This document shows positions 1 to 63,492 of a stretch of 64,000 nucleotides of DNA, piece by piece. The stretch is from Kudoa neothunni. Lineage: Eukaryota; Animalia; Cnidaria. The notes below the pieces were generated by a model. That model saw only the letters and a program-made list of their open reading frames with translations, did not search any database and was not told where the DNA came from. Where the stretch lies: positions 6,082,311-6,146,310 of the forward strand of contig OZ199839.1 in NCBI GenBank assembly GCA_964304625.1, given 5' to 3'. Positions within the stretch are counted from its first letter, which is position 1. Each line of letters opens with the position of its first letter. Both the position numbers and the translations under genes were made by a program.

Positions 1-57
1 TTTTTAATAATTTAGAAAGTTAAAAGGTTTAAAATAATTGTTATCAACCATTATTAT

Positions 58-2449
58 CAAATTAAATAAAATCCTATTGGAATATATCGAACAAATAGAA
101 ATAATCCGAGCTGTGTTTTAAATTGTATTGAAAATCTATTTTGTATCTGATTTGTAAACGATGGCTTAATAAAATCAATGTTTACATCGATCAATCTTCT
201 ATACATGAGTATCAATTTCTAATTTTTAAACTATTCCATATCGTAAAATATTTAAAACTTTTTAATGAAAAATTAATTTTGAATATATAATTTTTTTCTT
301 ATAGTAGTAATATTATAATTATAAATAATGACAAAAATGATTTATCGGATAATACACAATAACAAATTTTGTTATAACTTTTTAATAACAAAATTTTTCA
401 AATTATATATGTAAATTTTTAAGGAATGATATATCATATTTAACAAAAAGCTCATGTAATGTATATTAAAATTAGGTGAAAAAATAAATTCATTGTATTA
501 AATGGCGTTAATTCTAATATTTGAACACACATTTTAATATTTAAATATAAACAAATTCAAATGGACGTTTAAGACTATTTTTGAATAAATATTCAGAATG
601 AAGTGTACAGAGGTAAAAGTTTTTCCTCGTTCATTTAAACTTTAACAAATTGTTGAGTATGGAAGATTAACAAATTGGAATCCAAAACAATTAATTTATC
701 TAGGTATTTGATAATAATAAAGTATTCGATTATTGTTAAAACGTATACTTAACAGAATTAAATAGTTACCTGTCTATTATAAATTTATCTAAACCAACAA
801 GTTCATTGGATTCGAATTTCAACGTATAAGATTTTGTTTGGTCCATCTTCCCCATTCAAATGAGCAAAGTTTATTATTACACGTAATTTTTTCAAAAAGT
901 TGGTTTGAACTTTTCAAAACATTTTCTTGTTTATCATGCAAAACCATTTTAGAGATATATTACTAAAATCTTTTTCCAACGCAATATCTATCTTTAAAAT
1001 ATCATCTAGATATTTATTTGATATGCCAAATGAGGATGAATCTGTAAAAAATATAAACAACTGGGAAAACAACAATATTAATTACATTTATCAACTATAA
1101 ATGAATCTTTATGTTGTAATAAATTAGATACGATTTTAATTTTATAAAAACCATTTTCAGTGATATCATTTAACAATGATTACATACAGAGTTGTCACAA
1201 ACAAATCAGTATGAAATTGTTTTGAGTTTTTTCGACAAACTTCTCTGATTTTTTTTCTAACAATGTGCTTTGAATTGTTACGCGAAAGTTCTTAACGTTT
1301 TTAGTGAAACGTAAGGTAATCGCAAATTTTTCCGTCTATCCATTCATTTGAAACTTCATATTCGTTTGTCACTAAATATAAAAAACATTAAGAACAAACA
1401 CAATTTAATAAATTGTTACATTTTGGAATATCGATTTGAGTGGATTTCTTCAATAGATTTTCCGATATAATATCAATTTCATAAATAGTACCACTCTCAA
1501 CTCCTGTATTTTAAATACATGTAATCTCTCCCTGTTTAGTTGGATTCTTCAAATGATAGAGAGCTTTTTACTGTTTCTGAACTTTCATGCAATTTAAGAT
1601 TCCAATTAGAAGAATATCGACATATGGTAGTGCCAACTTTAAATTTATAGTAAGTGTAACATTGACCGAATCCAATTCCTCATAATTGTACGTTAATTCA
1701 TAATCACTAGGGGACTAGGAAAAATTTTATCTTATAATTAATTTAATAGTTTAATCATACGCTTCTTGGTGAATAAAATATTTTCTTCGTTGCAGGGAGA
1801 TACTTTCAATAATATTTTGTAATTTTCAATGGGTTTTATACAGGATCCTTAACTCGCAAAACATACCCAGCACAAGATATTTGTTGAGCCGATGAGAAGC
1901 AACCACATTATTACTCGAGCTAGTATCTAGCACGGTATAATCGCCTTGTATGTCTCCAACATTTGATTTTCGCTTTATAGAAACTAAAGTTATCATATCG
2001 GATGTAAGACTTTTTGAAACCTCAAAGTCACAATTTTTCTATAAATTAGAAACAATATTAATGTGATCACATATTTGGTAATTAATCATACGTTTCTTTA
2101 TAAAATATGGAGATTCTTTTCTAAATTATGAGACAATAGGATGAGAAGACGATTTTTGCTAGAATCTACGTTTTGAATCTCAAAATTGCATTGGTTTTTG
2201 TTGGCATGAAATTGTTTTTTCAATTAATGTTGGATCAGATGGTATTTCTCCCACAGCATAGATTGCGTGACCAATAGTTAAACTTTTTTCCTTTATTTTT
2301 TCAGCCAGCCGTAGTTTTATATCCAATTGTCTATCACCCCATGAATATTCAAGTTCATAGTGGTATATTTCTAAAATATACACATTACATTACACTCACT
2401 ACCAACATGAACGGATGCAGAAGTAAATAATTAATTTTAGAATAAACAT
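58..2449 (-). pseudogene. Modular secreted-protein family gene A, degenerate
   Basis: TATA-like TTAAATATAG near 2515 and ATG at 2449, giving a signal-like exon MFILKL..FTSASVHV with a 1-nt shift. Then ~280-300 nt exons (about 2370-2092, 2038-1761, 1717-1420, 1372-1087, 1042-769 and 699 onward) with GT..AG introns. Motifs ISCQQNQCNF, ISCAGYVCEL, YELEY and DYELTY. Several frameshifts and in-frame TAA stops; the 3' limit is approximate. Confidence 0.6.
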
Positions 2450-3205
2450 TTAAAATATTAAATTAATTTAGTCTAGATATAGAAAGATGTCCGTGTGTGA
2501 CTTCATAACGCTATATTTAAACTGATATTTGTTTTAATGTTTTTGTAAAGAGATAATTCATTTAATTACTGTTTAATTCGAAATTAATAGAGTAAACATC
2601 CTTCAAACTAAATTAAAAGTTAAAATTATTGGATATGCTAATAAAACAGATCAATAATGATAGTAAATAATAATTTAATTATAGACATTATCTCGATACA
2701 CTAAAACATTTAACAAAATTGCATTTGTTGATTTAAATGTGAAAAATAATCTAGATTATTATTTTAATTAATTTTAAACATTATTTCTTGATATCGAAGT
2801 CATATTTCATATGTTTAGAACGTAGGTCAATTTAAATTAAATTTTACTCATTATGAGAAGGAAAAAATCTTACCCATACCAATATTGTTCAATGATAACT
2901 AGTAAAAACTACATTGTTGGTTTTATTTGATTTGTGATACTATCTCAATACATTTTAAGTTTATATCTTTCTCTTAAGTACCAACAAAGTTTTTTACCCA
3001 ATCTTGGGTTATGAAAAACTTTTTGACATGTTTTAACCCACACTTTTGCCTTAGCACAGCGTTTTAAATAGAAAAAATTAAAAACTAGAAAGTTTACCTT
3101 TTTGCCAAATTATGAAATTGAGAACCTAGTATGTGAAGATAAAAAATACATTTTTTTATAACGACTTATATATTGTAAATGAAACTTACGCAGTTAAATG
3201 AAGTA

Positions 3206-3370
3206 GAGTGATACTACCGATTATCCGAAATTCGAGTTTTCTAATACATTATGTAACGTACATTTTGATTTTATTGAATTTATAATTTGATAAATTCGGC
3301 TTTACCAAAATCTCGATATACGGTGCGAAAATCGTTTGTTCCCCTATTTCGGATAACCGAAAATTATCTT
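3206..3370. mobile_element. Short Tc1/mariner-pogo-type MITE
   Basis: Imperfect TIRs (..CCGATTATCCGAAAT / ATTTCGGATAACCGA..) with TA flanks; TIR resembles the 50449-51636 family. Confidence 0.5.
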
Positions 3371-3532
3371 TAATTGGGTGTTATATTGTGAAAAATGTAC
3401 TAATACATTACAAATAATTAAATATAGCAGGTTCTTAATAATTAACGGCGTGTGTCGCGTATATTTTTGGAGGTTTAAGATTAAAAAATAGAGACCGTGT
3501 AGATGGAATTCGCATATAGGAAGAAGTTTTTT

Positions 3533-4634
3533 TAAGAGAGAGTAGATGCTGTTAATTTTTCAATGACTCTAACGAAAAATCGAGAGAATCGAAATTTGAC
3601 TTTAATTATTACACCGATAAATTTTATTATATAATAAAATACTTTTGTAACTTTTGATTGGTATGATATCATTTGAATTCGAGAAAGTAACAGAAATCTC
3701 ATCCAAACTTATATCCTTCGAAAACACGGCATGAATTTTTCCATCGAAAAATTTTGTACTATCAGGAGAAAAATATATATCTGTATCAGTATATTTTAAT
3801 CCAATGACTGAATCAGGTAACACATTGTATCCATCCAAATCGAGCATAATGTTTTCTTCATTATATTTCACGTAGTAATAATAGAATAGTGGATTAGACA
3901 CTAAGTCAAACAATAACTTTTAAATTATAAAATAAATACCAGTTGGTGATACATCATCAGTTCACCCAATTCCTCTGATACAAGCGTTTTTTAATATAAT
4001 CCAACACAATATCGTCATTAACTGTGTGATCGTACTTGCAGATTTCGACACACGTAATTGGAGAGTCTATATCTTTTTCATATATTTTATTATTTGTTTT
4101 CACATCAAGAATAGTTATTGATTTTATTCGAGTAGAAACAAGTGGTTGAGAGAGAAATATATAACACTTCAGATTTTTTTCGATTATTACCACCCTTCCA
4201 TAGACCTTATAGATTGCTATAAATTTATTATATAACACAACAAATATATTAGTTACATGACTTTTTTAAAGTTGAAGATATTGTTGAACCAAAAGAATAT
4301 TGAATTTTCGATTTATCAGCCACACAATTTTGTAGAAAATCCAAGATATAAACACCTTGGTTATTTGTCGTTGCTACATTGTAACATGCATCGGCGACGT
4401 TGACATCATCTATTCGAATATATGGTGTGATGGATTCTTTATTGTTTTTATCATAATCTAATTTTAAAATTGCTCGATATGGGTTTGCAATGTCGGTATT
4501 TTTTTCATCGAAAAGAACCAAGCTACTATCTTGAACTAAACAAATATGTAATAATCGATTAACAGTTATAAGAGCATTTAATATATGCGTAGAGAGCGCG
4601 CGAGTACGCAAGAAAATAATATAGGAAATTTCAG
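3533..4634 (-). CDS. Modular secreted-protein family gene B (three module exons); start non-canonical or lost
   Basis: Exons about 4536-4256, 4216-3966, 3916-3612 and a short tail ending TAA near 3533 splice in frame. Upstream exon reads (CTG)KFPILFSCVLARSL, is signal-peptide-like and has a GC donor. Confidence 0.6.
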
Positions 4635-4872
4635 TTTAATATTATCCTTAAAATTTATCAATTCGTGATAATAAAAAGTCAATTATAGTCCTATTATATT
4701 AAAACCGTTTTTAATGAAAAAAAATCAACGTATCATTTTTATCAAATAAAAACTGTTGAACTTTATGAGTTCTATTTTTATTAGATGTCCCTAATTTATT
4801 GAATATATTTAAATTATATTTTGGTTATTTAAATTAAAAAAAAAATTTGTTTTGGTTACATGGTAATATAAT

Positions 4873-6701
4873 TTAGTTGAAATCTATTATAACTAAGGAT
4901 ACTTGAATTGGGAGATTCTCATTGTTTAATAAGTTTAAAATAATTAATTTATGGTGATCGGTTAAAGAAAATATTCATACTTTTAAAAATAGTTTGCAAT
5001 AGGACCATTTTGTCTGAGGTTATTTCTAAAGTGGTTGGGGTTGGGCAATTATCACTGACCGTGACAATATCTTCACATTGATTTCCTTGGCAAAAAATAT
5101 TCTTATTAATGCTCTTGTAACATTCGTTTCGCATTTGGTCATAAATTGATTGGCTTAATATTATAACCTGCTGTGGCTGATTGGTACTAAAAGTGATTCG
5201 GTATTTTCTATTATCTATTTTGAGGAAATCTACACTCATTATCGTTGGAACTAAAGGGAAAATTTCAATCCAAATATAGTTTTTATTTATAATGGTTACC
5301 TTTGTTCAATTTTATAAACCGATCTTGAAACAGTAATAAAAATTCATATTCGTGTATATTGGATATAGAAATTTTGGTGGGGGTCGCTGAACACTGATTA
5401 CCTTTACATATAACTTCAATGTTTTGTAAATCTGACTTTTCTTCGCAACGTCCCGCATAACACCGAGTCGAATACACCGAACACATTATTCTACGTTCAT
5501 AATTGAGGGATGTAGAAATTGAGCCTTGAAAATGAATATTGCTTCCCAAAATCATAGCACTATATGATTCCAAATCCAACTTGTCTAACGCTAAAATAAT
5601 AATAAAATTATAAACAAAAATTTAAACTATTTCACTACCGATTTCATATTCATATTTCCTTTCCTGATATGTATAGCTCAATTTAATATTTTTATTTGAT
5701 AAATTTTTTATCAACAGCGTCGGACAAGTATCCGAATTGACATATGAATTCAAAGAATAAGAACTCTTATCTTGTGGAGATGATTTTTCAGCTGGTTCAA
5801 CTCGTTGGCTTTCTTCAACGTTTTGAGGGCTATCGAGTGTGTACATACATTCAATATCACTCATGGCCAAGGTTTTTCTGTCATCAAAATAACTTATTTG
5901 ATGTTTAGAATCTCTCCAAAATATATCTTTAATGTTAATATATAATAGTGTATTTACGATTAATAATATTTACCCTCAAAAGATCTTTGTACATTTTGTA
6001 TTATCGGTATATTAAAGCTAGGCTTGTCGTGTATTATGAGTTGTATTTTATAACCTAGTTCTTCGGAAAATATCTTTAATTCGCTGCACCCCAAATCAAA
6101 TTTATTTATTAATTCTTTGCATTCGAAGGGATCCCAAAATTGATTTATCTTGCTACTATATTGAGTGGTGCAAATACATGAGGTTTCCTCATCAGAATTC
6201 ATTGTAAGTTCAAATTCAAATTTATTTTCCTCAAACGATACGGATCGAAATAATTTTAGATAAAGCTCTAAAAGGATCCAACGACAATCGCATTTGTATT
6301 TCATAATTATTTAAATAATTATTACTTGATTTGAAAATTTTACATGAAGCTAATCGGTCGTTTTCCATTAGACAAAGTCTTATTATTTGACCGGGGTGTA
6401 CCAAATAATCAAGAGAACATACATTTGGATTGGAACCTTCTTCACCTACACAATCAAGTCTTCTATCTAATTCTACGTTCTCTTGAAATTTATCATTTTT
6501 AAAGATATAATATTTCATATATTTGTTGGAACATTCAGTATTTTCACATTCCACATTAATCTTTAATGTGTATCGATCCACTTCAGTTTTAGTGACTTTA
6601 ATTCCATTCTACAAATATTCATTTTAATATATATTAAAAAATGTAGAATATAATTAAATAATATAATTATAAATTATTGTTTATTGTAATATTTCTTTCA
6701 T
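4873..6701 (-). CDS. Modular secreted-protein family gene C (five module exons)
   Basis: ORF-track pieces 6231-6581, 5960-6304, 5622-5870, 5283-5579 and 4949-5239 join in frame through ~47-58 nt phase-1 GT-AG introns. Repeated motifs VECENTECS, VICKGNQCS and IFCQGNQCE. TATA near 6780; first (signal) exon unresolved. Confidence 0.65.
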
Positions 6702-7255
6702 AACAAAATTAGTGTATTCTAATTGAATACACTAATTATTTTGAGGTGAGAGAGGTGTATGATGAAGCAAAGTGCTATATATTAATAAACATGGAAAATT
6801 TCCAAATTATGCCCACTCTGCAAGAAAAAATATTTTTTTACTTAATGTAATAATTAAATTAATATTATTCAGTAATTAAGAAATATAGCTTCATAAATTT
6901 GAATACAATTGTGAAGTGATAAGTATTTAATCAAATTTAATCATATTCAAACAAACTATATTTTAAATCACAAACGTTTTAATGTATTAAGCGAGCGTTT
7001 GGACTAAAAGAGAAAGATAAGATGTGGCGTAGCGATATGAAAATATGTCCAAAATAAATAAACAAAAATAATAAGATTAGGATTTTGAGAAATTTAATTG
7101 AGTTAACGCAATCTTGTAATTCATGAAAACGTTATTGGATGTAATTTTCTATTTTATTATTTACAAATTAATAACTTTACAACCCTTGTGATATTATTTG
7201 GAATCCGTTAATGATAAATTCAAGTCAAAAATCAAAAATATAGAAATATTTTAGT

Positions 7256-7855
7256 CAGAGACCGTAATTTTCGATAATTATTTTTAAAAATTTCGACGGT
7301 TGTTTTTAAAAAAACTAGCGCATGCGCGACCTAAAATTTTATTATCGAGTTAAATGTCAATGAAATAAACATGAATATAATTTTTCACAAAATTTTCCCT
7401 TAGAATATAATATTTAATGCATCCTCATTCGCTAAAACGCTATATTCACCGTATAAACATTTGAAAAAATTCTTTAACTTTAAGAAACTTCTTTCTACGA
7501 CTGTAGGAGATAGAGATGTATGCACCAAATCTTGGCCCACCAAAACAATATGAAATAATTAGATTTGTTTGTTCTCTAAAATTCAGGACCTATCATTTCT
7601 ATGCAGTGTGAATTTTAACAACTCTTGTTGTGGAATTGTTCGTTGTTCGACGTTACCAAATTTTGTTATATTATTTAGATCAGGTTCCTCATTTGAATCT
7701 ATTTATTCGGATATTTCATTTTCAATATGTCTGCTTTTACTTTACATAATAAAACGAACAATAATAGATGAATTATCTCAATTGTAGCCGAAAAATGTAG
7801 AAATAATTATAAAAATTCGACGCTTATGGATTTTAATCGAAAATTACGACCTCTA
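7256..7855 (-). mobile_element. hAT deletion derivative; a second related element begins at 7864
   Basis: TIRs CAGAGACCGTAATTTTCGAT / ATCGAAAATTACGACCTCTA and a degenerate 8-bp TSD (attttagt / attataat). Minus-strand remnant SPTVVERSFLKLK resembles the hAT dimerisation motif. Confidence 0.55.
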
Positions 7856-10800
7856 ATTATAATTAGGGATCGTAGTTATCGACGTTTGTTATGCTTGCCA
7901 ATTCTAATGAACAAAGTTTTAACGTCGTATACATTATTCTCATTTTATGTGTAAATTGCAGTGGAGTTTTAATATAAAATTGTCACAAACTGATCTAATA
8001 TTTTTGAAGTTAGGACTATTTTATCGTAACATAAAAGGTCACGATATTCGACGCGCATAATAAACGTTGAAAGTTGCATTCACTAATTATAATTTATAAT
8101 ATAGCGGATTGAGGTATTTTAACCCAGCGAATCGTTTTAAGGTGATTCAGAACATTAATTTATATCTTATATATATATATAATAATAATAATAATTAGTA
8201 AATTATTACTATTTTATTCTTGTATTTTTAAAAATTTATTCATTTCATAAAAAAGTTTCTCATTAAATATTTATTTCACTTAAAAAATTTAATGAATTCA
8301 AACAGTCAGTATTGAAGTATAAATTAAGTTCTATAAATAATATTCAAAATCGTGAATAGATAACCACATGTATTTCATAATTTTAGATGGTGCCTCCTTC
8401 GACATGTTCACAACTAGTCTAACTCTAGAATGCATACGTGGTAATATTTAATAATATTATTTTTTTATGTATTTGGCTAGTTATATTTCATATTAAGCTA
8501 GTGATTATTTTTAGTATAAAACCATATTTTTCTTTTCTAATGTATGATGATAAAATACACAAGAATATCTTAGAAATATAAAAACACAATTATGAGGGGA
8601 TAAATTCTTGTATATGTTTATTTTTATGTAAATGACCATAAATCTAATTCAGATAAATATTGGAGATGTGAATACCCTGCCAATAAAGGACGTTATTTCA
8701 ACGTCACTATCGTCAAATATCTATTAATATAAAAAAAATGATACCATAACCACGTTGTTACATTTTATAATATTAAATCGTGCTGTTATTAACGCTAACA
8801 TTAAAAAGTGTGTATTAACTAAATTATATTTAGCTATCGAGATCTACCAAAATGTAATTTAAAATATTTTTAACAACGAAACGCGTACAATTTTAGTAAA
8901 TATCACTTTAAAAAGAAAATATCAAATTAAACCCAGTAAACAGTGATAAACTCTATTGTAAATTTTATCTGGGATCAATAACTAAAAAATATAACTAAAT
9001 ATAATAATAATTTTAAATGATAATGTTATTTTGCTTGGAAACTTATGTTTATTATTATTTTTGCGCATGCTCAGCTACCCGTATTAAATTGCTCAGCGCA
9101 AATCCTATTGCGTGTAAAATGATGAGCCAAGATGGTGTTACGCATTTTCATTAATAAAAACAACTTAATATAAACATATAATTTTTAAATTTTACTTATA
9201 ATAAAGATTACAAAACAAATATCTACCTGTATTGGGATGTCAAACATGTATATATAAAGGTATTCTGAAAATATTCCCAGTATAAAAAATTTAAAGATAA
9301 TAGTCATTAGTTTTTCATAACAGGATTAGATTAGTTGAGAAAAATATTAAATAAACTAAAATATATTTTTTTCTAACTCTAATTACATTGAGATCATCAA
9401 AATGCATGCGAGGCCTTCTGACAATCTTTATAACAATTTATTTCTTCCTTGTTAATCTTGTAAATTTAAAAAATTTTGAATTCTATTTGTTTATATTATA
9501 TCTATTTAATACTTATTCCGGATTTTTCAATGTTTATTTTTGATTTTAATGTTTTATAGTTCAAAAGATATTACAAATGGTGGTCGTATATTATGAAATT
9601 GATTCATAAATTATTTAGCTTCGATATTTTCGAATGGATAAAAATTAAAACTAACAATGATGCTTACTGCATAAAAACAGTTTTAACATTAACAGATTAG
9701 TCATATTCGCGTACGCACATACTCATCCAAACTTTTATATTATGATATTTTTCCATTTAGCTTATAAGCGTAGAGCTTAATTCATGTATTTATACTGAAA
9801 TAATTTTGGTTTAGTTTATAAATTTTTTATATAAGAGTTATGTCAGTTTTATGTGTTTCATTTTCTGAAAATACTTTAATCCTCGATCCACAACTTGAAT
9901 TTTACAATCAATCGCTCGTACACACAAAGATTATTTTAAATATTTTCTGGGTTAAAATAAGATCCTTTAAATATGAATAAAATGAAAATATTGAATTCTT
10001 CAAGAACTTAATTCCCGTCTAAAAACCGTTGTAACCTTTATATAAGAATCAATCGCTGTTTCCTTTACATTTATACATAATATATTTGTTAATCAACTAA
10101 ATATGTTTTTTTTATATTATACATGTTTGAAAATGTTAAACCAGCTGATTAATTTTAATCAGCTATGGAATAATAGATCTTTTTGAAGTTCATAACCCAG
10201 AAATGTAGATTCTGTTACAATTCCTTTATTTTTCAAAACCCTTCATTTCTTTTTGACTACCATATTAAGAAAAATAAATGATACAATTTTATCTTACGAA
10301 AAAGACTTATCATATCTAAAATCGAAGTTAATTTCCAATAGGTTCCTCAAACAAAATGTGTACTTTTGTAATTGACAAGAGCAGCTCATTGTGAATTAAA
10401 GTTAAAAATTATGAATAATGTTTAAATATAACATGAATTTTCCGAAAATATAAAACTTGATTAATTAGTAAAAATGATTTGTTTCTCAGATTTTAATTCA
10501 TGTATACCTTTATTAAGCTAGACAAAAAACATTTTTTTCGTACTCAAATTTTTGATGTTAACCGTAATATAAATAATTTATAATTAATATATCGTCAAGC
10601 AACTTTATTAGTTTTAATGAACAAAGTATTTAACTACTTAAGAACGTGTGTATGTATTGCTACAGATAATAAAATCAAATAAATATAAATTTGAGTTATA
10701 ATGAGATTTTCATTGTAAATTTCCAAATCATATAAAAGGAATCGGTTATAACTTGTAACAATCCCAAATAATTTCGATGATCCCGTACCTGGGCTAGATG

Positions 10801-12324
10801 TATGAGCTCAGTCTAAAAAAGTATTGTTTGAAAGTAAAGATCATGGGATGATAGAAGATGACATCAAATGACACTTCTAACGTGTTAAACATTCTACGAA
10901 TCCATTTTGGATAGTGATATTGAATTTTTAAATACAATAATGGATTTATTGGATACAAGGACAAATAATATATTTCAAATGATTAAAACAATTTAAAAAC
11001 GTAATATTTTAACAAATAATTGGATATTTTACTTGGGTATAAATTTTTTAAAGATGTTCATATATTATATATTCTTCGAGTGTGCATAAAATTAAATAAA
11101 TTGGACTGTTCTGCATTTTAAGTATTTATACTTGTTGAAAGTATAACACCAAATCGGTTACATCCTATTTTAATCCTTATAATTCATTTGATGGGGAATA
11201 GTCGTATGAATTTGTTTAAATATTATATCGTATAAAAGTTAATAATTCTCATAGCTGGTAAATATAGAATTCGAAATGGGACTTAATAAATACAAATAAC
11301 TAACAAATTATAACATTATTATGAGCAGAGAAATTTTACGTATTAATTTCACATGGTATGGTTTATATCAAATTAAATAATACCATAGGAAAATATACGA
11401 ATCGCTCAAATATATATATATATATATATGTTTTTATTGTCTTATTCTTATTGTGAAAATAGAATCGATCGAGCAATTGCGGGTTTGATTTTATTCTATT
11501 ATAGTCATGTTGGTTGTTTTTGTTAATTATTTGTTATGAAGCTTCCAATTGATTGAGTATATGTGTATATATTGTATACAATTTTTGTTTCTTATCATCA
11601 GTCGTATATTATTATTAAACATTAAGGCTTTAGATGAAATTAAATTCATTTATATGTTTAAAAATGTAATCCAAAACGTCGAAACATACAAATACAAATT
11701 TTATAAAATTAATTTTTAATTTTAATATTACTGGCATGTAGATTAAATTGGATTTAAATATTAAATCATTTAGCTAAACGATGTCAGGCATATACGCAGT
11801 GATCGTAAAAACCAGAACAAATACTCCACCAATACAAAGTCAAAAAATTTACATATTTTTAATTGGAGTTTCAATCATTAATGAGGAAAATAATTAAAAA
11901 TAAATTAAACAAGATAATGATGAATTATTATATATTCTAAGCATTTAAAAAACAAATGGCACCACACATTGTTGAGAAAAGATAAGTATGTTGACGTGTC
12001 GACCGCTTTATCTGAATACCTCCATTATGCATTAAAAGAATGGAATTCTATAATGTAAATGTGCTACACACTAAATTATTAAATAACTCCATTACAAACC
12101 TATAAACAAGACAAAATAAAACATTCTCATACGCGCGCGTAGGTACTAGTCAAGAAGTAAAAAATAAAGGTATACCCAAAGCAATGAATAACTACTTAAA
12201 ATTCGATAAATAACGTCTACATATATATTTGGTTTTTCCGAAAAATTGTCTTTTTTGAAAAATAAAAAACTAATCGAAATAAGTTTAATCTTGTTATTCT
12301 CGCGCGTGCATCATTGATTTAGAT

Positions 12325-12518
12325 CAGGAGTTCCCAACTGGGGGTTCCCGCGCCTTAGGGGGAGCGAACTTTGGTTTCGGGTGGTGCGAGATCAGATCAT
12401 AATTGAAAATAATTTTTGATAAATTTTGAGTCAGTTACACCTTGTCGTATGCAAGGGGGTGCGAATTCTGTTTGTCAAAAAATGGTGGTGTGAGTCCAGT
12501 TTTAGTTGGGATGCGCTG
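12325..12518. mobile_element. hAT (Charlie/Buster-like) MITE
   Basis: Perfect 8-bp TSD ATTTAGAT on both sides; TIRs CAGGAGTTCCCAAC / GTTGGGATGCGCTG. Confidence 0.8.
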
Positions 12519-12536
12519 ATTTAGATAGAGACACTA

Positions 12537-13211
12537 AAATAGGCAACCGATAATACGCACATTCATCGAAACTTCCGATTCAAATTTTATATTAGCTGAT
12601 ACATTTTATAATATTTTTATGATTCCCGAAATTAAATATCTTTAAAATATCTTTGAATTAAACTAATTAATTATACGTAAGTTATATCACGTGGCGAATA
12701 AATAGTACATCTTTTTCGGCCAAACTACTTAGATTAGATTCTCGTTAAATGGAAAGGGGGTAAAATTTAAATTCTTAAAGTTGTATATTTACAATATTTA
12801 TCAAAAATAATCATTTCTGTGTAAAAGAAAATCGAATAAATTCTATTTGTAGACAATGTTAGCTGCCAATTAAAAAATAATGTTAGAGATACACTCTACA
12901 AAAATTTTGAGTGAAAATTGAAAAAAATTCCATATAGCACTAAAAATAAAAAATAAATATAATAGTATTTATAATTTTATAATACCAACCTTTCATTATA
13001 TTTTATCCCAACGTAAAAGAATATAAATATTTTATCATTAACGAGAATGTTAACAAAAATTAAAAATTATTTTGGTAATAGAGGTGCTTACACCCCCATT
13101 ACCAAGAATAAAACTGCGAACGTATTTAAAGTGCGTATTTTCGGTGGATACGTTATGTACGCAGCTTTTTTAGTGGTCCGAATGGGATTACGTATTATCG
13201 ATTACCTATTG
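12537..13211. mobile_element. TA-flanked MITE, same family as 37330-38083
   Basis: TIR (A)AATAGGCAACCGATAATACG / CGTATTATCGATTACCTATTG; internal similarity to the copy at 37330. Confidence 0.7.
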
Positions 13212-13424
13212 TATCTAGTTATGATAGGTTTGTGAGGGTTTATGTAATAGTTATGCGAGCTTGATTTCTTAAATGTCACAATAGGCAATTATTCACAAAA
13301 TTAATAATTTTGAACTAGAAAATGTGAAAAAGCAGCCAAAAATAACTTTAAACATGTACCTGAGAAGTTTACTCTAATATATGAGCATCAACTAGATATT
13401 AAAGAATACCAAGTTTGATGAATG

Positions 13425-14333
13425 CGCATATATGTTGGTAAATAATTGTAGGTTGGTTGCATACTTTATTTTTTATTATTCTATATTTTTTTTATATTTT
13501 TAACGAATATTTTACTATATATACATATATAAACTTATGCTTGTTAATACAATGTGAAAACATTAGTTTAAGGTACAGTAGTGCTAGATCCAGCGTAATC
13601 GTCGCAAACATACAACAGATTTATGCGACCCTAACACCACTGCGCCATTTTTGAATGATGTATACTAGATTCTAAAAAATGGACTATTATTATTAATTTT
13701 TTTATAATTTCTTCCATATTTGGACATTGTGAGTTGTACTAATAATGATGGTAAAATGATAAAGTATCAATGAGAAGTATTTCCCCAGAATTTCCTCATT
13801 AATTAAAATATGTCATATTCCAACAACTCAATATTGAGTAATGATTGTTAAGACTCAATAAAACTTAAAAGTGGGTGTTATGTGAAAAACTGATATGTGA
13901 ACGTTGTTGAATTGAGTCATTTAAGTGGATAAATTGATCTTTTGTGGTCACTTCTAGTTTGTGATTAATCAATCCAATAAATTCCATCTCTATATTTCCT
14001 ACTTCAGAAATGATTTAAGGGAGTTTGTCTCTATCCAAAATTTATTCGTTCATCTTGAACATAAAATATTATATTATCTATGCAACGCTGTTTCTATTAT
14101 TCAAACATAAACTTAAATTGAATAAATAACGAACGTATATATGTATCAAAAAAATGTATTTTCCATTTTAACCAGGCATTATTTCAAATTTCAAGGAATT
14201 TTTATCCGAAAATCCCAGCAAAAAGCTGTTTTGGTTAAACGAACTTTTATTATTTAGAAGCTACATTATTTTCAAATAATTTTTAAAAAATCATACGGAT
14301 AGAGCGATTTTCGGATAAACGAATTTCGACTTT
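13425..14333. mobile_element. 5'-truncated copy of the pogo-type MITE at 50449-51636
   Basis: Colinear similarity (e.g. AAAAAATGGACTATTATTATTAATTTTTTT and GAATTTCCTCATTAATTAAAATA) and right TIR TTTTCGGATAAACG. Confidence 0.8.
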
Positions 14334-14918
14334 ATGTGAAATGATGTATTTTAGGATTCAACATTGGTGTAACCCTCTAATTACGTCCGCCAAAACTTCC
14401 TACGGAAACCATAATTATTTAAATATTATATTCGATTTAATATATTTATCCTCTAACGAACTTAGGATCTGGGGGACACCAAAGTGATTCTCAGTTGATT
14501 GAAATATATTGCGTATTCTGCCGAAACCCTTGAAACTCACATTATTCCCTTTAATTTAAGATATTTTTAACTTAATTAACATAAGTCAATCAAGAATATT
14601 TAAGGGAAGAAATATAATTTTTAGCTCTAACTAGCTTGGGATCTTTTGATATTTGGTTTTAATTTTAAGATAGTTAATAAAACGAATATTTCAAAAATAC
14701 CGCGAAAATATTAAGAAATTTCTTCCTGCCGAATTCTGACGTATAATTAAAAAAATTTTCTGACCTGTGTACATTAAGATTTCACATGTCGAATGATATC
14801 CTACAAAATAAATCTAACCTCAAATCCCACTTTGAGTCTATCAAAATAATTTAAATTAATATTATAATGAATATAACTCTAATTAATTCAAATATGTATT
14901 AATTTAGTGAAATTTAAA

Positions 14919-17900
14919 TCATACAAAATTTGATTCAGGGTAATAATCCAACAAAAACCTCGTTTGTCCATTATACCATAAAGACATTCGGTATTCGCTT
15001 CCTGGTTCTGGTTTCAGAGCTTTAACATTTACATGATTCACCTTGACATCTTTAAGGTTCGATGCGACTTCAGTAAATGCATCATTTTTTTTAATGAACC
15101 ACTTGTTTTTCATGGATTTGTGATTTCTACCCAAAAATAAATGTTTATAATAAATGTATCCGTCTGAGTTTTGTATTTTAAAGTTGTGTGCGTTGTCAAC
15201 TAAATATGAACAAAATTTTAACTTTAATTTGCAAATGAATTTACATAATAAATTCATTGGGTTCTGTCCATCATAGTCCAGACTCATAATTATGTCGTTA
15301 TATTTTTGATTTCTATTGTAATATCCAGGAAAATCCATTCTACCGCAATTTCGTTTAAAACATTGGTGATTCATAACGCCTACTCTTTGGACAAGGTAGC
15401 CAGGCGTGTTTAATTCCGTATAATAACAACATTTAAAAGTATATATATCAGAATTTCGGTCAAATAATGCCAACGAGCGTTCGGTCCAATCATTTTCCCA
15501 TGTTAGCGACAACGGCGCTAAATTAAAGTAGTTATTTGTATAATTTACGAATTTAATAGTTACTTGAATGAATACTCAATTTTTCTTTCTCATTATTGGC
15601 TGTAAAAGTGACTTTTAAAGTCTGATAAATATACAAGTCAATGCTAAACTTGTTGCATGGTTGCGATTCACTAAAAATTATATCCAATCTATCCATAATT
15701 CATTAAAAATTCACCTTAACCCTTTATTCGATGACACTTCGATTTTGCATGACATGTTTGGGTTTTTCTGATATTTGTTACGAATATATATTTTATTTTT
15801 GTGGTAGCGTAATCCAACTATCATTTTATCTTTATCTATATAATCGAATGTTTTAATATCCAAATAATATTAAAAACTTTAATAAACTAAAAGTGGCGAA
15901 CAATTAAAATTAATCTCGTACTTAAATAATCATATATATTCATAGTAATTATAATTTCTATAGTTTATTACCTAATATATTTAATAATAAATATGATAAT
16001 TTATTGAAGTTTATTGTTATGAAATATTTTAATTTCTTACATATTGAGAACGATTTCTTGAACAACAAATTCATTCCGATGCGTACTGAAACAAGATTTT
16101 CCTCATATAAAGATGTTTTGACATTTAATGCGACGTTGCATTTTTGTACATACGCTAACTTTAATTTCGATTTTTCGTCAAATTTTTTATGCGACCTAAT
16201 ACTAATTTCACAGTATTCTTGTGTTTCAATCCTATTCACAGGTGAGATTTGATGGTTATTATCGGTCATTTTTATATTATAATCAACCTCGTAATTAGCT
16301 AAAATTAAAAGTTAAAATTGAAATAATATTTATTATTTCATACGTATATGTAGTAATTTGTTTAACTTTTGATTATTATTAAATATTATCTCCAAATAAA
16401 CTGTTTTTGCTGGCACAAACCCAACATCTAACGAATAGATTTCGTTTTTGAATGTGAATTTATTCAGACAATCATTTTTACAATCGTAGCATATGTATGA
16501 CGATTTCTTCGAGCCTCCATCCATTTGATACAATACTACACTATTAATCGATTCTTTTTCTATAGTTGATTGGATTCGGAGAACGAAATTGTTGTCAGAA
16601 GACTTCTGGATGTTGGCATTCAATGATTCATCATCTAATATTTTTATTAAAAATTTTAATGAATCTTGTAAATAAAATGAGTGATTCAACTACCGTATAG
16701 TAATTCAATGTAGAAAGTACTGTTAAAACCTGCCAATTGTATATAAAGTCCTAAGGCATCAGTTGAAAGAGGCGAAATGGAAGTATCGCATTTTAATGGT
16801 TGGACATCGGTAATCATATTATTCCAATTATTATATTCTATTTGTAATAATTCTCCGTCGTCAATAAATTTAGTGTAACAATATTCTTCAACAAATTCAC
16901 TTTTAATTTTGAAACTACTTTGATTTCTTTTTAGCTTAAAATTATATTGTTCGTAAAGATTTTTAACCGTATGCAAGTAATTCAATTGGGGAATATATAT
17001 GTGCAACGATAATGGCTTGACTACCGAAAGATCAATTACATAGTTGCTACATACTTTGTAACCATCATGCGACAACGGCCCATATGAGTCATAGGTTCCA
17101 GAATTGCGATAACCGTCCATAAATGTGTCAACTCTAACCAATGTATATAAACAACTCAATTGGTAATCTTCCGGTATATTGGACCAAACGGTCATTTTAT
17201 TATCTTCAAATGAATAATGAATTTTAATCAGTGACGGGTTCCATGGCAGATATTTTTCCCAATACGCGGTATTATGGGACAAAAATATTTTATATGATTT
17301 TAGTAGTTTTTTTTCAAAGATGATGATATTATCGGTAATATATCCAACACAGCCGGTTTTGATATCTTTTTTACATACATATCTCTTCTCCAAACTATCC
17401 CCAGATAGTTCATCTAACACATATTCCACGTCTTCAATAGATACATCACTGTTTAATATAATTTTGAACCGATCTAATTCATCATTCATTTTGAAAAATG
17501 GTGTTTCATTTTCTACATAATAAAATTATATATTGTGAGTAAAAAACTAGCTAATTATACTGAATTGTACTGAACGAATTATTCTTGTTTTGCTTTGGCT
17601 ATCAGTTAAGGCTAAATTCAAGAAACCTCCCTTTGGTTTTCCACATTTAAATTTTATTTTATTTTCGTCAGATTCTTTTTGGCATATGCTTTCCTCAGAA
17701 AACAACGAAACTCCTTCTGGATCAATATAATAATGCTCAATCACGTATAGATTGTTATGATCAATATTTAAACCAGTTAAATTAATTTCAAATTCGTCAT
17801 TGGGCTTTGTATTTAACATATATGGCATATCTCTGAAATTATTTTCTAAATAATTTTATTCATTTTATTTAAAATATAATTATTACTTCTAATAAAGAAG

Positions 17901-18592
17901 TCAATCGGATTAGCAACATCTTTAATTTGGAGGGTTAAATCGACACTAATGGCATTCGATGGGATTTGATACGATGGTTCATCACAATAATTATAAATTG
18001 ATTCGGATTTGGTTTCACTGCCAGATCCCGAATCAATTGATTTGATTAAAATGTAGCAAACATATTTTTTATGATTAAATATAGGACTTTGGAATATAAT
18101 TTTGGATTCTTCATTTATTGTATAATCAACAATATTATTTTCGGTATCTAAACATTTTCATTATAATTTCACTAAGGGAATATTAAATAATAGAATGTAC
18201 TTCTGTAAATTTTCAATGCTTCCTTTTGTTGGCATATATCTGATTTAACAAAAAATAAATAGGAACGTAAACGGTTAATGTCATAAATTGACATGCTACA
18301 AATGTTATCGATGTCACATTTTATTAAACTTTTCCTAGACAGTCGAACGGTAGACCCTTCATTTGAATCTACTAATTTCCAATCAATCTCTACATATTTT
18401 GTTGGTTCTAAAACTTTTAGCCAAACGTCCAACACATTCAAATTAGATTTATACGCATATTCAATATGACAATCCGAAGTGTGTGCTTCTACAAAAATGT
18501 TACGCCATTGTTTAAATAATTTTTAATTTAGAGATTAAATTACTTCCAATAATAAAATTCATAAAACTTATCACTAGGATAAGTACCATCAT
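14919..18592 (-). CDS. Modular secreted-protein family gene D, ~1,000+ aa, near-intact
   Basis: Signal exon MMVLILVISFMNFIIG (ATG 18592, TATA-like near 18650) followed by about nine exons joined mainly by phase-1 introns, including a 29-nt intron near 16660-16690. One apparent 1-nt shift near 15870. Ends ..LLDYYPESNFV* with no TM segment. Confidence 0.75.
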
Positions 18593-20595: not shown

Positions 20596-21950
20596 TGGTA
20601 AAATCTTATGTTTGTATTATTTGTTGCGACAAATAACATTGTATAAATGATTAAGGGAATTAAAACACAAATATTTTGTTTCACTAACTATTTATTAATT
20701 GGAAATAGTAGCGATTGCTCTTAAAAAATATCCGAAGAAAACCAATATCCTTCATTTATGGAACGCAACCAGGATTCGTATAGGTAGGTATCTAGCCGAT
20801 TCCTAGACACACCGCTCATTTTCCGAATAATTTTTATTATCAGGTGATGCCAAACAACCTCGAACGTTTTAGTATGGTAAACCTCGGGAGTGACATACTC
20901 TTCAGAGTGATTAACGGTTATATTATAATAACTGTAAATTCGGAGAGAATTGTACCCTAAGCACTCGCTTGTATATATTGTAGTCACGTTTTCAATTCCC
21001 TGTAAGACAAGCTGAGTCAACGTTGGTTTATATTTTTTTCGGCCAAAAAAAAACATGGATTCTAACTATTTGCGTTTGACATCGTCGTCGGAGCATTCGT
21101 AAATGTCAAGAATCCAAGGAACGTTCACTCGGTAGCCATACATTTCAGTCATCCGTTGACGCCTCAAAGGAGTCGTTCCACGGAATAACCTACATCTTAA
21201 GAAATAGTTTGGAGTGGCTAATCATCCGTACATGCTCAAAAATCTTCCAACATTGTTCTTACAGCGATCTCTTAATAAACATTCGTCAATGTCAAAGATT
21301 CGATTTACATCACCCATTTTCTCGCGTCGTTGGAACATTTTATAACAAATATTCCTCAACGTTGAATACCAAATTGTAATGGTTTTCGGATATTTGAGTT
21401 AATGCTTCCACCCTGCATCTTTGTTTATCAATACACCAAAGGTAAATTAACTCAAATAGCCGAGACACTGCTATTTTTGATACGTTTGACCTGATCGTGT
21501 TATTTATACCAAAGAAGAAAGAGGTCCTAGGGGAAAATGAATTCTACAATCACTCCTATAATTAATATTTTTAAAGGTATACATAAAATAAATGTACTTT
21601 AAAAAAATATATGAATACCTCTCAATCTCATCATTATCATCACATAAATCGGTCGATGATTTGATTCCCTTTTTTTGTACCTTGTAGGCGTAATGTGTTA
21701 TACCTGTGACAATTCTTGCATCGATTACGTATATTTTGTAAGAATCCCTTATCCGCTAGGTAAATGAATAGAGCATTCACATTAAACAAAAGTTTATAAA
21801 ATTGACGTTGAGTTGAAAATTCCGCCATAAACATATATTTTGTTAATTGTTTTAAATTACAAATACGTATAAATTTTTAGATTTTATGCTCCTGTATTGG
21901 CCAATATTTTGGATTTTTTATCATTATTAGCGGCGTTACATAGTTTTATC
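20596..21950 (-). mobile_element. Degenerate Merlin (IS1016/IS1595-like) DNA transposon
   Basis: N-terminal CxxC (RCKNCHR), DIDECLL..KNNVGR near 21285, and TIYTSECLGYNSL..TVNHSEEYVTPEVYHTKTFEVVW, matching the DDE_Tnp_IS1595 pattern. Imperfect TIRs GGTAAAATCTTATGT / ACATAGTTTTATC. Confidence 0.8.
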
Positions 21951-23375: not shown

Positions 23376-26300
23376 TCAATTTAAGGAAAAACTAAATATT
23401 TTGCTGGATTTGTAGAAATTATCGATAATTTCAGGGTTTTTTTTCTTTTGTTTCTGGTGGAAACAAAGCCACAAACACAGCTGCAGCAATACAACATCCC
23501 GCATAGAACCAATAGCCCCCAGAAACTCCAAGTTTATTGCAAAGACCTTCATGGAAGATCGAAACAACAAACGAAAATATCCAGTTAGTTAGAGATGCCA
23601 ATGCAAGTATGGCGCCGATGGTTTTGCTAGTGGATATTTCGATAGATATGACCCATGGAACAAAGTTCCATGTGAGCATATAGAATACGAAATACAAAAT
23701 CAAGCAAACCTTTGGTAACCATGATATATACTGTTGATTACTAGTGTTCTCGCTATCGAAAAAGGTCAATATAAAACAGAGTCATCTCATAACATCTACT
23801 TATAAAAGAATCCTAGAGCAATAAGTGGTACAGCTAGTAACAGGCCACCACAAAATCCAATTATTTTTCTACTTCCATATTTTCCCACTGGCACACTTAA
23901 GAATGTAGTCGGAAATATTGCCACCGCAACTATAACCACACTCAGGCCACTGAGACGATACGATTCACATATAGGACATCTGATTTTCGCATTATTGTCG
24001 GATCCTATAAACCAGCATTAATTCTGAACTATTTAGGAATTCTATCAATAAGTTACACATACTTGGATTTCCGCTTTTTAGAATGTCATTAAGATTGAAC
24101 ATAATTGCGTAGATTCCTATGAGATTAGCTAATATTTGTAGAAAAAAGGTGAGTAGAATTCGTTTGATATTTTCCAGCTTGCCTAACTGTCTGAAGGTAT
24201 CTTTTAAAGCTAAGCAAATAGAATACAATATTAATATTAATTTAATAAATTATAACATAGAAAAATAGATATTAGATGTGCATACTCATTTTGTCAGTGA
24301 TTTTTTCCTCATCATAGAATTTCAGACCAAAACTTGAATTACGGTAGACTCGTCTTGCAAACCTCCTCATTTTAATTTCAAGCACATCCTTGTTAAAACT
24401 CTTAAACTGTTTCCAAACAGGACTTTCAGGCACAATAAATCCGATCAAAAATTGATAGCCAGCCAATATTAGCCCAACCAAATGATTCCACAGAATAACA
24501 TTTGCAAAAACATATCCTTTAGTATTGTTAGAGTTGGCTAAACACATTCAGTACTCATGAAAAGAGAGCAGCGTCTATATATTTTACTCTAGGAGAATAA
24601 GTCTTTTTTAAACTATAACAAATTAACTTGTTTATAATAAATTAAATAGAATTTATTGCATCAATTATATGATTGAAATTACTTGTTGCATTCTAATAAT
24701 ATTTAGAAAGAAATATTCGAGGTAAATTTATGTAATAGTAATTTTATTGGTACATGTTTAGATGGGAATTATAACCGAATAAAATAAGAAATATTTAATT
24801 ATTAGCAAAAGAAAATTTAAAAAAATTATATTTTTTATTAATAGATTTGGTATAAATGCGAATTGTGGTTTAATTTTGTATAAAAATCGAGTTAAAATCT
24901 CTCCTTCACACAGGATCGCACATATTCTTCTTTGAAAAAATCTATTAATCAATTTAAAAGAATAAACCTAAAGTTTTTTTAAATTTCACTCTTCTAAATA
25001 TTATGCTAAGTGGAATTAAAATTAATTTTCGCATAAAAAAAATAATTTAATCTATATGGCTTGGTGGAAACTAACGACAATTAAATTTCTATCGTTAGGA
25101 TAAGGCAAAAATTGAACTGAAATAACGATTATCATACTTGTAATGAAGGGGTCGCGGTGGTGGTTCGAACTCACGAACCGTACCGTCCCGCTGCTGATCC
25201 CGCGGATGTTAGTACGTTAGCTTCGGTTACATCCCTAATGCAATCAACGATTATGTTGTATTATTCCAGGCACATCCAAAAGAGTTAAAAGTCCTCATGT
25301 CGTCAGATATGCGACGAAATCTTTCCCTCTTGATGTCTAACAACTCTAAACTGCTCTCCTTTCACTAGCATATCGGCGGCGACCTTCTTTGGCAGATTTC
25401 AGCCATACTTTCGGACTTTCTCTTGATGTTCAAATGAATCTCACGGACCAATATTATACTGGTAGTTGAGAACTAATCCCTGCGTAACGTAACGCTCTCT
25501 CTGAGTCGACAACCTCAATTTTTGGATGAGTTTGGGATCATTTTTGACCTTAGGATGAAAATAATAGTCTTACGAATATATTTCTTCATCAAAAACGGCA
25601 AACACTAAAATCTTTAAATTATAATTATCTTATTGTGAATTTGGTTGCAATTTTCACATATTATTGATAAATGGGGCTTACAGAAACTTTTCGTTCAATT
25701 TTAGTAATAAGTTGAACGTTTGCTGTTATGCTTTCTAGGATAGATGGGAGGCATCTTTACCAGTAATTCAATTCTCCTTTTTTGCATAATTTGATCTGGT
25801 TAGTTACGTTGTCAATTTCATATTCCATATGGAATTTCTTCACAAAAACAATGTTATATTTTCTTTTTGTTCAAAGATGAAAAAGTATATCTCTTAGCGG
25901 ACAGGATTATGATGAAGATATTAATTTGATCACACAGTTTTGAGAAGAAATTATTTTAAAAGAATTTAATATTAATATAAACTGAATTAAAATCAAATAA
26001 AAATATAAATTTAATTTTTTGAGTACTGAACAGGTTGGATGGAAAATAAGAAAAATAACTTTGGGCCAGGTATACATTAATGAATACATTTCAATCTAAA
26101 CTTTATTAAATGCAGGCATCTGTTATCAATTTTTCGTTTTCCATAATACGCAATAATAAAAATTAAACGTATTGTGGAATTTAAAACAGGTTTTATTGGT
26201 TTAACATATATTTTTGTATGTATAATAGATGGAGATAAAAAATATTTCGAATTTGTTATTTCATAGGCAAATTGAAAAATTGAACGACTCGTTATTAATG

Positions 26301-28251
26301 GATTATTGCATAGATTATTAAATTAGATAATTTATAGTAACGTAATTTTCTTTGCTTAAACTAGGACTGATCTGTTTATAATTAGTGTCATTCCAAAAAA
26401 TATAAATAAGAGAGAATCATTTTACAATTTTTTTTTAATTTTTTTGGCTTTCATAGCTTGTGTAACGATGCATTTTCCAGTTAGTTCACATACTTCATTT
26501 CTCTAAACATTAAAATATTGTTGGCCAATTGTATTTATTATTCGTATTTCTAATTGAAAATTTAACTAAACAATTATTAAACTTGAGTATAAAAAATATG
26601 ACAGTCTAAATCTTACGGATGAATTAATATTTATCTCGATTATAAAGTATCTTAGAGAAAAACTAATACCTTAATCAGTCATAAATAGATAAATTCTACG
26701 TAAATTTATAATTGTTCCCCGATAGTCGAGTGATAAATCATGGGGTAGGATTAAGGCCAGGCCCGCAGAAATATTATGCCCATCCCTGATCTAGATCCTT
26801 CTACAAAATCTTAGGAAGGTCTAAACGTTAGCAAGAGTTTTACATCAAAAATAAAATTTAAATTTATTTATTATGTTGAATTGTCAATGCTTTAATATAA
26901 TTATTTATTCCTGGGTCAAAAATGACTCCAAACTCATCAAAACGTGAATATAGGTCAAAACGTGAATAAAAACAAAATGAGTTCTAATATAAGAACAGCA
27001 TTATGCAAAAAAAAATAACATATATATATATAAGTGAATTTACAATTATAAATTAGATTTTTATTGTTGCTAATCAATATAGCTATTAAGAAGTGAAATT
27101 TTCTCCTAGGTCACCTTTGATCCCAAATTCAGTATAGGTGTGTGAAAGTTCACACAAAGTACGCCGATAAAGACACCAAGTCAATAGTAATACTCTTATA
27201 CCCGTACGCGCACTTCATAATTCTTAACACTCCACACCACTTCCACTGAAGAATAGTAATAGTTTCAATAGGAGGGGGACATTCTCTGTCTTTGTGATCG
27301 ACTTAAATCATTATCATCATCATTGCGTGCATCAATGGCATCCAAAGTGTGATTCGAGTTTCCATTTGGAGCGCTATAACTATTTCCATTATCATTAGGC
27401 GAGGTTGAATTAATATCATCAGCTATAGGGGACATCCACCGGAAAAGGGATTGGAGACATATCATAATTTTTTTGATGGATAATTGCTTTTAAGGGGGTA
27501 GTTACTTGTAGGAGAATCTCTTGAACGATTAGGTTTCAAATTGTTCATATGAACCACATTAGCATTAATGTCCGATGTTGATCAAATAATTAGTCGGACA
27601 TAATTTCTTTAATATTTTACATAATCCACTTCACATTGATTCCAATTTAGAGTGTATATTTTGTAGCTTAAGTCATGCAAAATTACCAACTTTAATGTTT
27701 TCAATCTTCTATTTATATTATCGAAATCACAACATAACTGAGAGTCGTAAATATGAATTCGAGACAGTGACATGTTTCCGAAATTTCTCATCGGCATTTT
27801 TAAGGAGGTATGTTTCACCAAAAAAATCGGGGACCTCAGATGATCTAGGTTCTCTTTCTTGAGTCAACCATAACGGACTATAAACGGTTTTGTTGTGAAT
27901 AGCACTTCTATAATTAATAATAATATTAATATTAAAAATAAAAGCGGCAGTACTTCGTCCCATTGAGCACCTTGATTAATAGATTTTGCAATAGGTTTCT
28001 TCAATGTTCCATTCACTCTTTCGACAATACCGTTGTCATCTCGATGTTCACCACTTGTTGTTATCTTTATACCCAATATATTATCAATTTCTCGTATTAA
28101 ACTTTTATTGAAATTAGTTCCCTTGTAGAAACGAACATGTAATGGAACGCCGAATCTAGAAATAACTTCATTCACCACACATTCGGCGAGTATCTCAGTG
28201 TCGGTACAACATAATGGAAGGGCTTCGACCCCTTTAGTAAATGTGTCTCAT

Positions 28252-28289
<38 letters not shown>

Positions 28290-62417: not shown

Positions 62418-63492
62418 ATGTGGTGTGCCTTACAAGTGTTATGCATAATTTTCTCAGTATTACTAAAGGTAGTCTAAATTTGTGTTCGATTTCTAAATGT
62501 TGAACAATGTGACTGAGTTTTGATCTGACTAGTTCACTGGAATCGTCATAGTGATTGTTGGTGCTGCTCTAAAGTTTTTCCTTGTTAACAGCTGTCAAAA
62601 AGAACTATCCTTGCCCATTGGATACATTTTTATTGTTATCGGCTCCGTCATTATACTACAAATGATATTAGTTATATCTGCTTGTTGTTTAAATTCGCTG
62701 GATATTTGCTCGATTATTGTGTTTGTGATTTCATTTGTTGTGGTGCTAGTATCAAGCGGATTTTTGATATATATCTGGTTGGTCAGAAAAAATGTAATTA
62801 TCATCTTCAACGTCTTATAAATTGTTTTGTAGATAATCGAGGGAACAGATACATGTATTGAGCATGGAGCGTTACTTCCTCTGCAATATTTTGGATACGA
62901 AGATGAATATATCAGTATAGCAAAGGAGGCTGTACTCATTTTAATTATATTCGTTAAATAACACACTTTAATAGTACCAATGCTGCAGATTAACCGACAT
63001 TATAGCATTTAACTTCACCGGAACATTCTATTTGGATAAAGATCACAACCAAGCGGTTTCAGGTAATTATATTTACGTATGTGGCGCAATGATTACACTA
63101 CTATCGAAAATAACCATTAATTCAGCTATATTAGCGTTTTTATTATAACTATGAATTATAAAATTTAATAGAAATTAATGAAATCGCTGAAGCCGGTGTA
63201 GTCCAACAAAACGAAGAAAATGATGATCTTGATCAAGAAGACGACGACCAACCCTTCGACTGCAATGACAATATAACTGTCAATACTGCAAAATGTGCTG
63301 GTTCATTCAAGATGCTCCTTTCATACATTTTACCTAGATTTATTGGATCCTTGAGTGGAATAACGTCGTATTCGGTATAAATTCTGTATAAATAATACGG
63401 GTATCGTTGTTGACGCTTCTCTTCTAGTTTGTTGTTCTAACTTTGTTGGTCGGTTACCATTGCTGGATGTTAACAGCAAAACATTCTTATGA
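62418..63492 (+). CDS. Divergent tetraspanin-like protein
   Basis: ATG 62418. TM1 across exons 1-2, TM2-3 in exon 2 (IVIGSVIILQMILVISACC), extracellular loop with YQCCR and an acidic tract, then TM4 (VVFGI..GIVVDASLLVCC) with a frameshift near 63390. TGA at 63492. Confidence 0.7.

Follow-up and report, generated by a model that had tools for sequence, protein, structure and literature searches.

The question raised by this locus is whether four same-strand blocks of short module exons (A to D) in the genome of Kudoa neothunni, a myxozoan parasite of fish, are four separate secreted genes, as a preliminary description held, or parts of a larger unit. The window (the whole stretch of DNA analysed) is 64,000 nt long, and positions are those of the window unless prefixed G000:C2. 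By comparison with paralogous loci, the blocks are very probably consecutive ectodomain parts of one predicted adhesion GPCR gene (G000:C2:6080216-6100902, minus strand, ~32 exons, ~2,780 aa). The predicted protein runs from a signal peptide through 24 FN3/Ig-like modules, a short stalk and a GAIN-like domain with a GPS to a 7TM region and a basic cytoplasmic tail.

Splicing was inferred from GT-AG sites, intron phases and paralogues (none of the four sequencing runs is recorded as RNA, and no spliced junctions turned up), and database searches and fold predictions were run exon by exon. The part of the gene inside the window consists of 24 minus-strand coding exons between 18592 and 770, with canonical GT-AG boundaries, module exons of 250-300 nt and introns of mostly 39-59 nt. 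Each exon has colinear paralogues in the genome (~27-62% identity) from which it diverges far more at synonymous than at non-synonymous sites, so the exons are truly coding. The expectation that module exons are joined mostly by phase-1 introns was borne out by 21 of the 23 window introns, the exceptions being phase 2 (D7a/D7b) and phase 0 (D9/C1); the B2/B3 phase and those internal to A were taken from paralogues because of indels in the assembly. The features are as follows.

18544..18592, minus: exon 1, start codon and hydrophobic signal peptide (16 codons, phase-1 donor GTAATT), followed by a 55-nt intron
18201..18488, minus: module D1, FN3-like seven-stranded sandwich with a C-x5-C pair; the most conserved module (67% to paralogue W)
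17887..18147, minus: module D2, phase 1-1
17561..17845, minus: module D3, phase 1-1
16694..17512, minus: exon D4, three modules in a single exon (three exons in paralogue Z)
16344..16634, minus: module D5, phase 1-1
16041..16298, minus: module D6, phase 1-1
15564..15835, minus: module D7, two exons (15835-15715 and 15670-15564) separated by a 44-nt phase-2 intron
15245..15517, minus: module D8, phase 1-1
14925..15199, minus: module D9, phase 1-0
6609..14924, minus: D9-C1 intron, 8,316 nt, phase 0
4981..6608, minus: modules C1-C5 (6608-6326, phase 0-1; 6267-5974; 5926-5639; 5590-5300; 5250-4981)
4536..4980, minus: C5-B1 intron, 445 nt, phase 1, without a signal exon
3643..4535, minus: modules B1-B3 (4535-4257, 4216-3940, 3900-3643)
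2371..3642, minus: B3-A1 intron, 1,272 nt, phase 1
770..2370, minus: modules A1-A5 (2370-2092, 2038-1761, 1714-1420, 1371-1086, 1041-770)
1..769, minus: A5-stalk intron, which exits the window (874 nt in full)

The division of D7 recurs in paralogue W, and D7 is a single unsplit exon in X and V. The 45-nt intron after D8 is stop-free, so that D8 and D9 resemble a single ORF. A search of 769-1 for a further module exon found none.

The wide gaps between blocks (8.3, 0.4 and 1.3 kb) and the stops that follow shortly past each block are what could suggest four separate secreted genes upstream of an unrelated short GPCR, a reading whose probability we regard as close to negligible. In other copies of the locus, the D-C, C-B and B-A gaps are introns of 47 nt (Z; 225 nt in W), 48 nt (V) and 124 nt (W), respectively, which leaves no room for a gene end, a promoter and a signal exon. 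Donor and acceptor phases agree at all three block junctions, including the single phase-0 junction at D9-C1, with C5-B1 and B3-A1 in phase 1, and the order D-C-B-A-GAIN-GPS-7TM is kept on one strand in every paralogous locus read. The blocks end in splice donors; at the end of D9 there is a conserved phase-0 donor and no true stop. The D9-C1 intron of this copy is filled by at least four families of dispersed repeats (~7235-7865, 8446-9078, 9257-12121 and 13405-14335), and inflation of some introns by transposons would be what made one gene resemble four.

Signal-peptide exons point the same way. One had been proposed for each of four genes (though not resolved in C), and only that of D survives: an equivalent exon is positioned likewise in all five paralogues checked (W, X, V, Y and Z), and it is the only such exon of the gene. 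No ATG-hydrophobic-GT candidate was found for B, and none for C within 2.6 kb. For A, a candidate at 2449-2413 was rejected, its GTTCAT donor being unlike the gene's other donors and the exon being absent at that place in the paralogues; the hydrophobic ATG ORF at 2449 could join in frame through this donor, but it lies within the B3-A1 intron and is a chance ORF. TATA boxes are non-diagnostic in this region of ~26% GC. A GPCR gene separate from the blocks would, moreover, have no start codon or signal peptide of its own.

The remainder of the predicted gene lies just left of the window (locus L043), as follows.

G000:C2 6082205-6081931, minus: three short stalk exons
G000:C2 6081886-6081429, minus: GAIN-like exon
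G000:C2 6081369-6081126, minus: exon with GPS and TM1
G000:C2 6081081-6080822 and 6080779-6080713, minus: TM2-4 exons
G000:C2 6080666-6080216, minus: exon with TM5-7 and stop codon

The GPS (PF01825) scores 24.9 bits against a Pfam cut-off of 22.5, in the same exon as TM1 (25.9 in paralogue Z). His and Thr occupy the expected cleavage positions, within H-T/T-S-Y-A-I-I-F, an agonist-like peptide is present, and a PDB sequence search with this exon matched only ADGRF1, ADGRG6 and ADGRL3, all weakly. The 7tm_2 domain (PF00002) falls below its cut-off here exon by exon, yet the profile order is kept (36-117, 160-249), and the cut-off is exceeded in paralogue Z (22.2) and in the homologue L059 (24.0); the division of this domain among divergent exons is why the family escaped a 7tm_2 scan of the whole genome. 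Five helices were called by hydropathy, and TM3 and a split TM4 by profile position. No Pfam match to GAIN was obtained, and the GAIN exon alone was recognised by neither Pfam nor the structure atlas (leads only); the GAIN+GPS piece of L059 gave a 0.96 match to GPS clusters.

A long adhesion-type ectodomain and a GPS/7TM end on the same predicted polypeptide have strong genomic support. Observed directly are exon order, splice-phase compatibility, the GPS and 7tm_2 matches, the beta-sandwich fold of four modules and linkage at 15 loci. The proposal of secreted or spore-structural proteins gives way to that of a membrane receptor ectodomain; an ectodomain shed after GPS cleavage would be extracellular, the sole sense in which "secreted" may hold. 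The reported lack of a TM anchor is correct for the window, which contains no TM segment, and wrong for the gene, whose GPS and 7TM lie 0.9-2.1 kb to the left. The warning that ORF-only annotation fragments this locus was well founded: ORF-based or window-limited annotation yields several false "secreted proteins".

The modules had been described as beta-strand-like, and the predicted structures of D1 and D4 are indeed beta-rich. The D1 model (from an alignment of 42 modules) has seven strands with a pLDDT of 91.7, and its best structural matches are FN3 domains (IL-12 receptor complex, IFNAR1, LAR and fibronectin; Z 8-9.3, rmsd 2-3; atlas TM 0.78); a Foldseek search returned nothing under E 0.001, and FN3/Ig-type rows above that. 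The D4 exon was modelled as beta-sandwich units, of which D4a and D4b gave weaker Ig/FN3-like matches (Z up to 8.2). These fold statements cover four of the 24 modules, D1 and the three of D4. No Pfam fn3 or Ig match was found for 20 window ORFs or the 42 aligned modules, and a PDB sequence search with the module profile found no relative. Extracellular beta-sandwich modules carried mostly one per symmetric phase-1 exon remain the fitting description.

By sequence, one family comprises D1 and A1-A5, together with C5 and B2 in some paralogues; the remaining modules are not detectably related. The likeness noted earlier between the first modules of A and D is real, D1 scoring 41 bits against a profile built from paralogue A modules only (best of 1080 shuffles, 11 bits), and the absence of nucleotide similarity between blocks was confirmed. 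The hydrophobic-x-C-x(4-5)-C motif, said to occur in many modules, is present in only about one third of them, and the two instances cited from A (ISCQQNQC and ISCAGYVC) are readable only when a frameshift is bridged.

Between paralogues, conservation of D1 (67%) and D4 (55%) is close to that of the 7TM (59-65%), and the other modules show 30-46% identity. Because D1 and D4 are conserved like the 7TM, the distal end may carry a conserved binding function. The middle D4 module (16960-17230, minus) contains a loop, R-V-D-T...G-T-Y-D-S-Y-G..., that is conserved throughout the family, near-invariant among close paralogues as well as a homologue from a marine metagenome, and modelled with pLDDT under 50; it is a candidate ligand-binding site. 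Elevated dN/dS in two modules (near 1.3) depended on few sites, and positive selection is not claimed.

The very large ectodomain also allows the gene to be read as real but serving mainly for adhesion or as a shed coat of the cell surface, with the ectodomain freed at the GPS or truncated isoforms secreted, and with little G-protein signalling; we hold this to be possible, if doubtful. Consistent with such a coat, modules are under relaxed selection (dN/dS 0.57 between recent paralogues) and the 7TM diverges from the Pfam profile. Against it, the 7TM and the tethered-agonist-like peptide are 59-73% identical between paralogues, as conserved as the best modules, and the module-profile search of the genome found no module-only gene copies.

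That search placed 142 of its 143 matches within the D4-to-GPS spans of 15 loci; the single match outside (G000:C2:6287142-6287405, plus) is borderline (E 0.001). For each of the 15 GPS loci in the genome there is a D4-type exon 9-37 kb upstream on the same strand that has this locus as its nearest downstream GPS. Module number varies: the five-module A block is tandemly repeated in other copies (twice in X, at least twice in V), and Z differs in its set of modules. The earlier description of the family as lineage-specific, fast-diverging and variable in module number, in the genome of a parasite, stands, with A-block copy number differing between paralogues. Two near-identical D4 exons (L004 and L005, G000:C1:16020455 and 16026151) lie 5.7 kb apart and have one common downstream GPS; L004 also has a D9-type exon before D3 and a run of N, which would reflect either an artefact of assembly or internal duplication of part of the locus. 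In paralogue Y (G000:C2:11709500-11729499; L041 and L042), many exons are frameshifted, including D4 and GPS, by assembly error or because Y is a pseudogene.

Beyond this genome, convincing relatives were limited to a few metagenome and Logan contigs. L059 (another species, 19.5% GC) has modules followed by a GAIN-like region, GPS and 7TM, all within 3.4 kb. L052, L056 and L059, from two ENA metagenome assemblies and one Logan run, are probably stray myxozoan DNA and represent the family in other species. Three long profile-search matches (P0127, P0128 and P0130) were rejected as homologues, their alignments being confined to 22-36 positions surrounding the cysteine pair.

In the assembly the reading frame is broken in B2, A1-A5, the GAIN exon and one of the stalk exons. 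The broken frames of B2, A1-A5 and the GAIN exon would fit a single receptor gene of which this copy is a recent pseudogene with its 3' half frameshifted, which we judge very unlikely. Comparison of the assembly with short-read contigs over window 1-6000 listed 44 indels and 8 substitutions; nearly all differences are one-base indels, and these affect exons as well as introns, 4915-5569 being free of them. B2 measures 277 nt in the assembly and 282 nt, a multiple of three, with three short-read indels (letters at 3986-3989 are ambiguous). A1-A5 are intact in paralogues, and the D, C and 7TM exons of this copy are intact and under purifying selection. The published assembly has ~7-fold HiFi coverage (PMC12239612). 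Assembly error is therefore much more likely than a pseudogene, the short-read check having covered window 1-6000, with the GAIN exon outside it.

The window also contains other coding and transposon-derived sequence. Sugar-transporter exons occur at 23431-24547 (minus), of which 23431-23769 matches Pfam Sugar_tr (E 3e-17), and exons at 35401-35905 (minus) resemble another transporter gene by eye. A piggyBac-type transposase remnant is found at 48173-49761 (minus; DDE_Tnp_1_7, E 1.5e-36), and an intron of paralogue W holds a related element. Fragmented LTR-retrotransposon-like ORFs at 27600-30600 (minus) have protease-, RT-, RNase H- and integrase-like segments by eye, and probable DNA-transposon remnants, likewise judged by eye, lie at 20721-21876 (minus; IS1595/Merlin-like) and 33084-33494 (minus; pogo-like). 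Two unannotated coding stretches are on the plus strand: exons of a gene with a long N/S/P-rich low-complexity stretch (52003-53764), and a hydrophobic tetraspanin-like exon without a Pfam match (62551-62820).

Adhesion GPCRs are cleaved at the GPS, keep the ectodomain and signal through a tethered agonist upon binding or pull (PMC12716839). By analogy, the Kudoa receptor would cleave itself at H-T/T-S-Y-A-I-I-F and retain its long ectodomain. This might bind a distant ligand, either from the host or the parasite's own, with the conserved modules D1 and D4 at the distal end probably making the contact; binding or pull could then expose the tethered agonist and activate a G protein. G-alpha loci that score above cut-off are present in the genome. 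Growth of the family may have involved duplication of genes in tandem as well as the in-frame addition or removal of symmetric phase-1 exons, and transposons would have enlarged some introns. A further possibility is that the ~15 giant adhesion GPCRs form a variable host-facing receptor repertoire, their modules reshuffled by unequal recombination and perhaps alternative splicing, and that it serves recognition specific to a stage or host, or evasion of immunity, in either case coupled with G-protein signalling; this we consider unlikely, the observed part being the variation in module number between copies.

The published K. neothunni genome comprises 40.2 Mb in three chromosomes (N50 12.0 Mb, median intron 49 nt), with ~5,300 predicted genes and a median protein of ~350 aa (PMC12239612). 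In so small a gene set there are ~15 GPS loci, and the copies read encode very long adhesion GPCRs. This points to a surface-sensing system that the parasite has expanded rather than lost, and makes the family candidates for host or tissue recognition.

Adhesion GPCRs are defined as a class by GAIN/GPS and 7tm_2 (PMC12716839). With members of this class (B2; ADGRF1, ADGRG6 and ADGRL3), the predicted Kudoa receptor shares a signal peptide, a long modular ectodomain, a secretin-class 7TM, a GPS with W and C-x-C-x-H, and a T-S-Y-A-hydrophobic tethered-agonist-like peptide just before TM1. It differs in its ectodomain of 24 orphan modules without a Pfam match, in a GAIN N-terminal part that is apparently short and has no Pfam GAIN match, in having no HRM that we could see, and in a GPS tripeptide of H-T/T where H-L/T is common. 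FN3 domains are known from adhesion-GPCR ectodomains, including those of sponges, choanoflagellates and filastereans (PMC4302439, PMC12716839). Those receptors carry fn3 domains that Pfam recognises, whereas in the Kudoa receptor the entire ectodomain consists of diverged modules in a long array, and many of these have a disulfide-like pair of cysteines. The seven-stranded sandwich of D1 is common to the FN3 domains of cytokine receptors, receptor phosphatases and fibronectin, but at 4-14% identity and with no sequence-profile match this is a common fold that does not imply family membership. Giant adhesion GPCRs with an ectodomain built as a long chain of beta-sandwich repeats are exemplified by ADGRV1 (Calx-beta array) and CELSR/Flamingo (cadherin array), which are conserved low-copy genes; the Kudoa receptors have a different repeat type and form a fast-evolving family of ~15 copies with variable module number. 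A literature search found no description of an expanded family with an orphan array of at least 24 modules in a reduced myxozoan genome.
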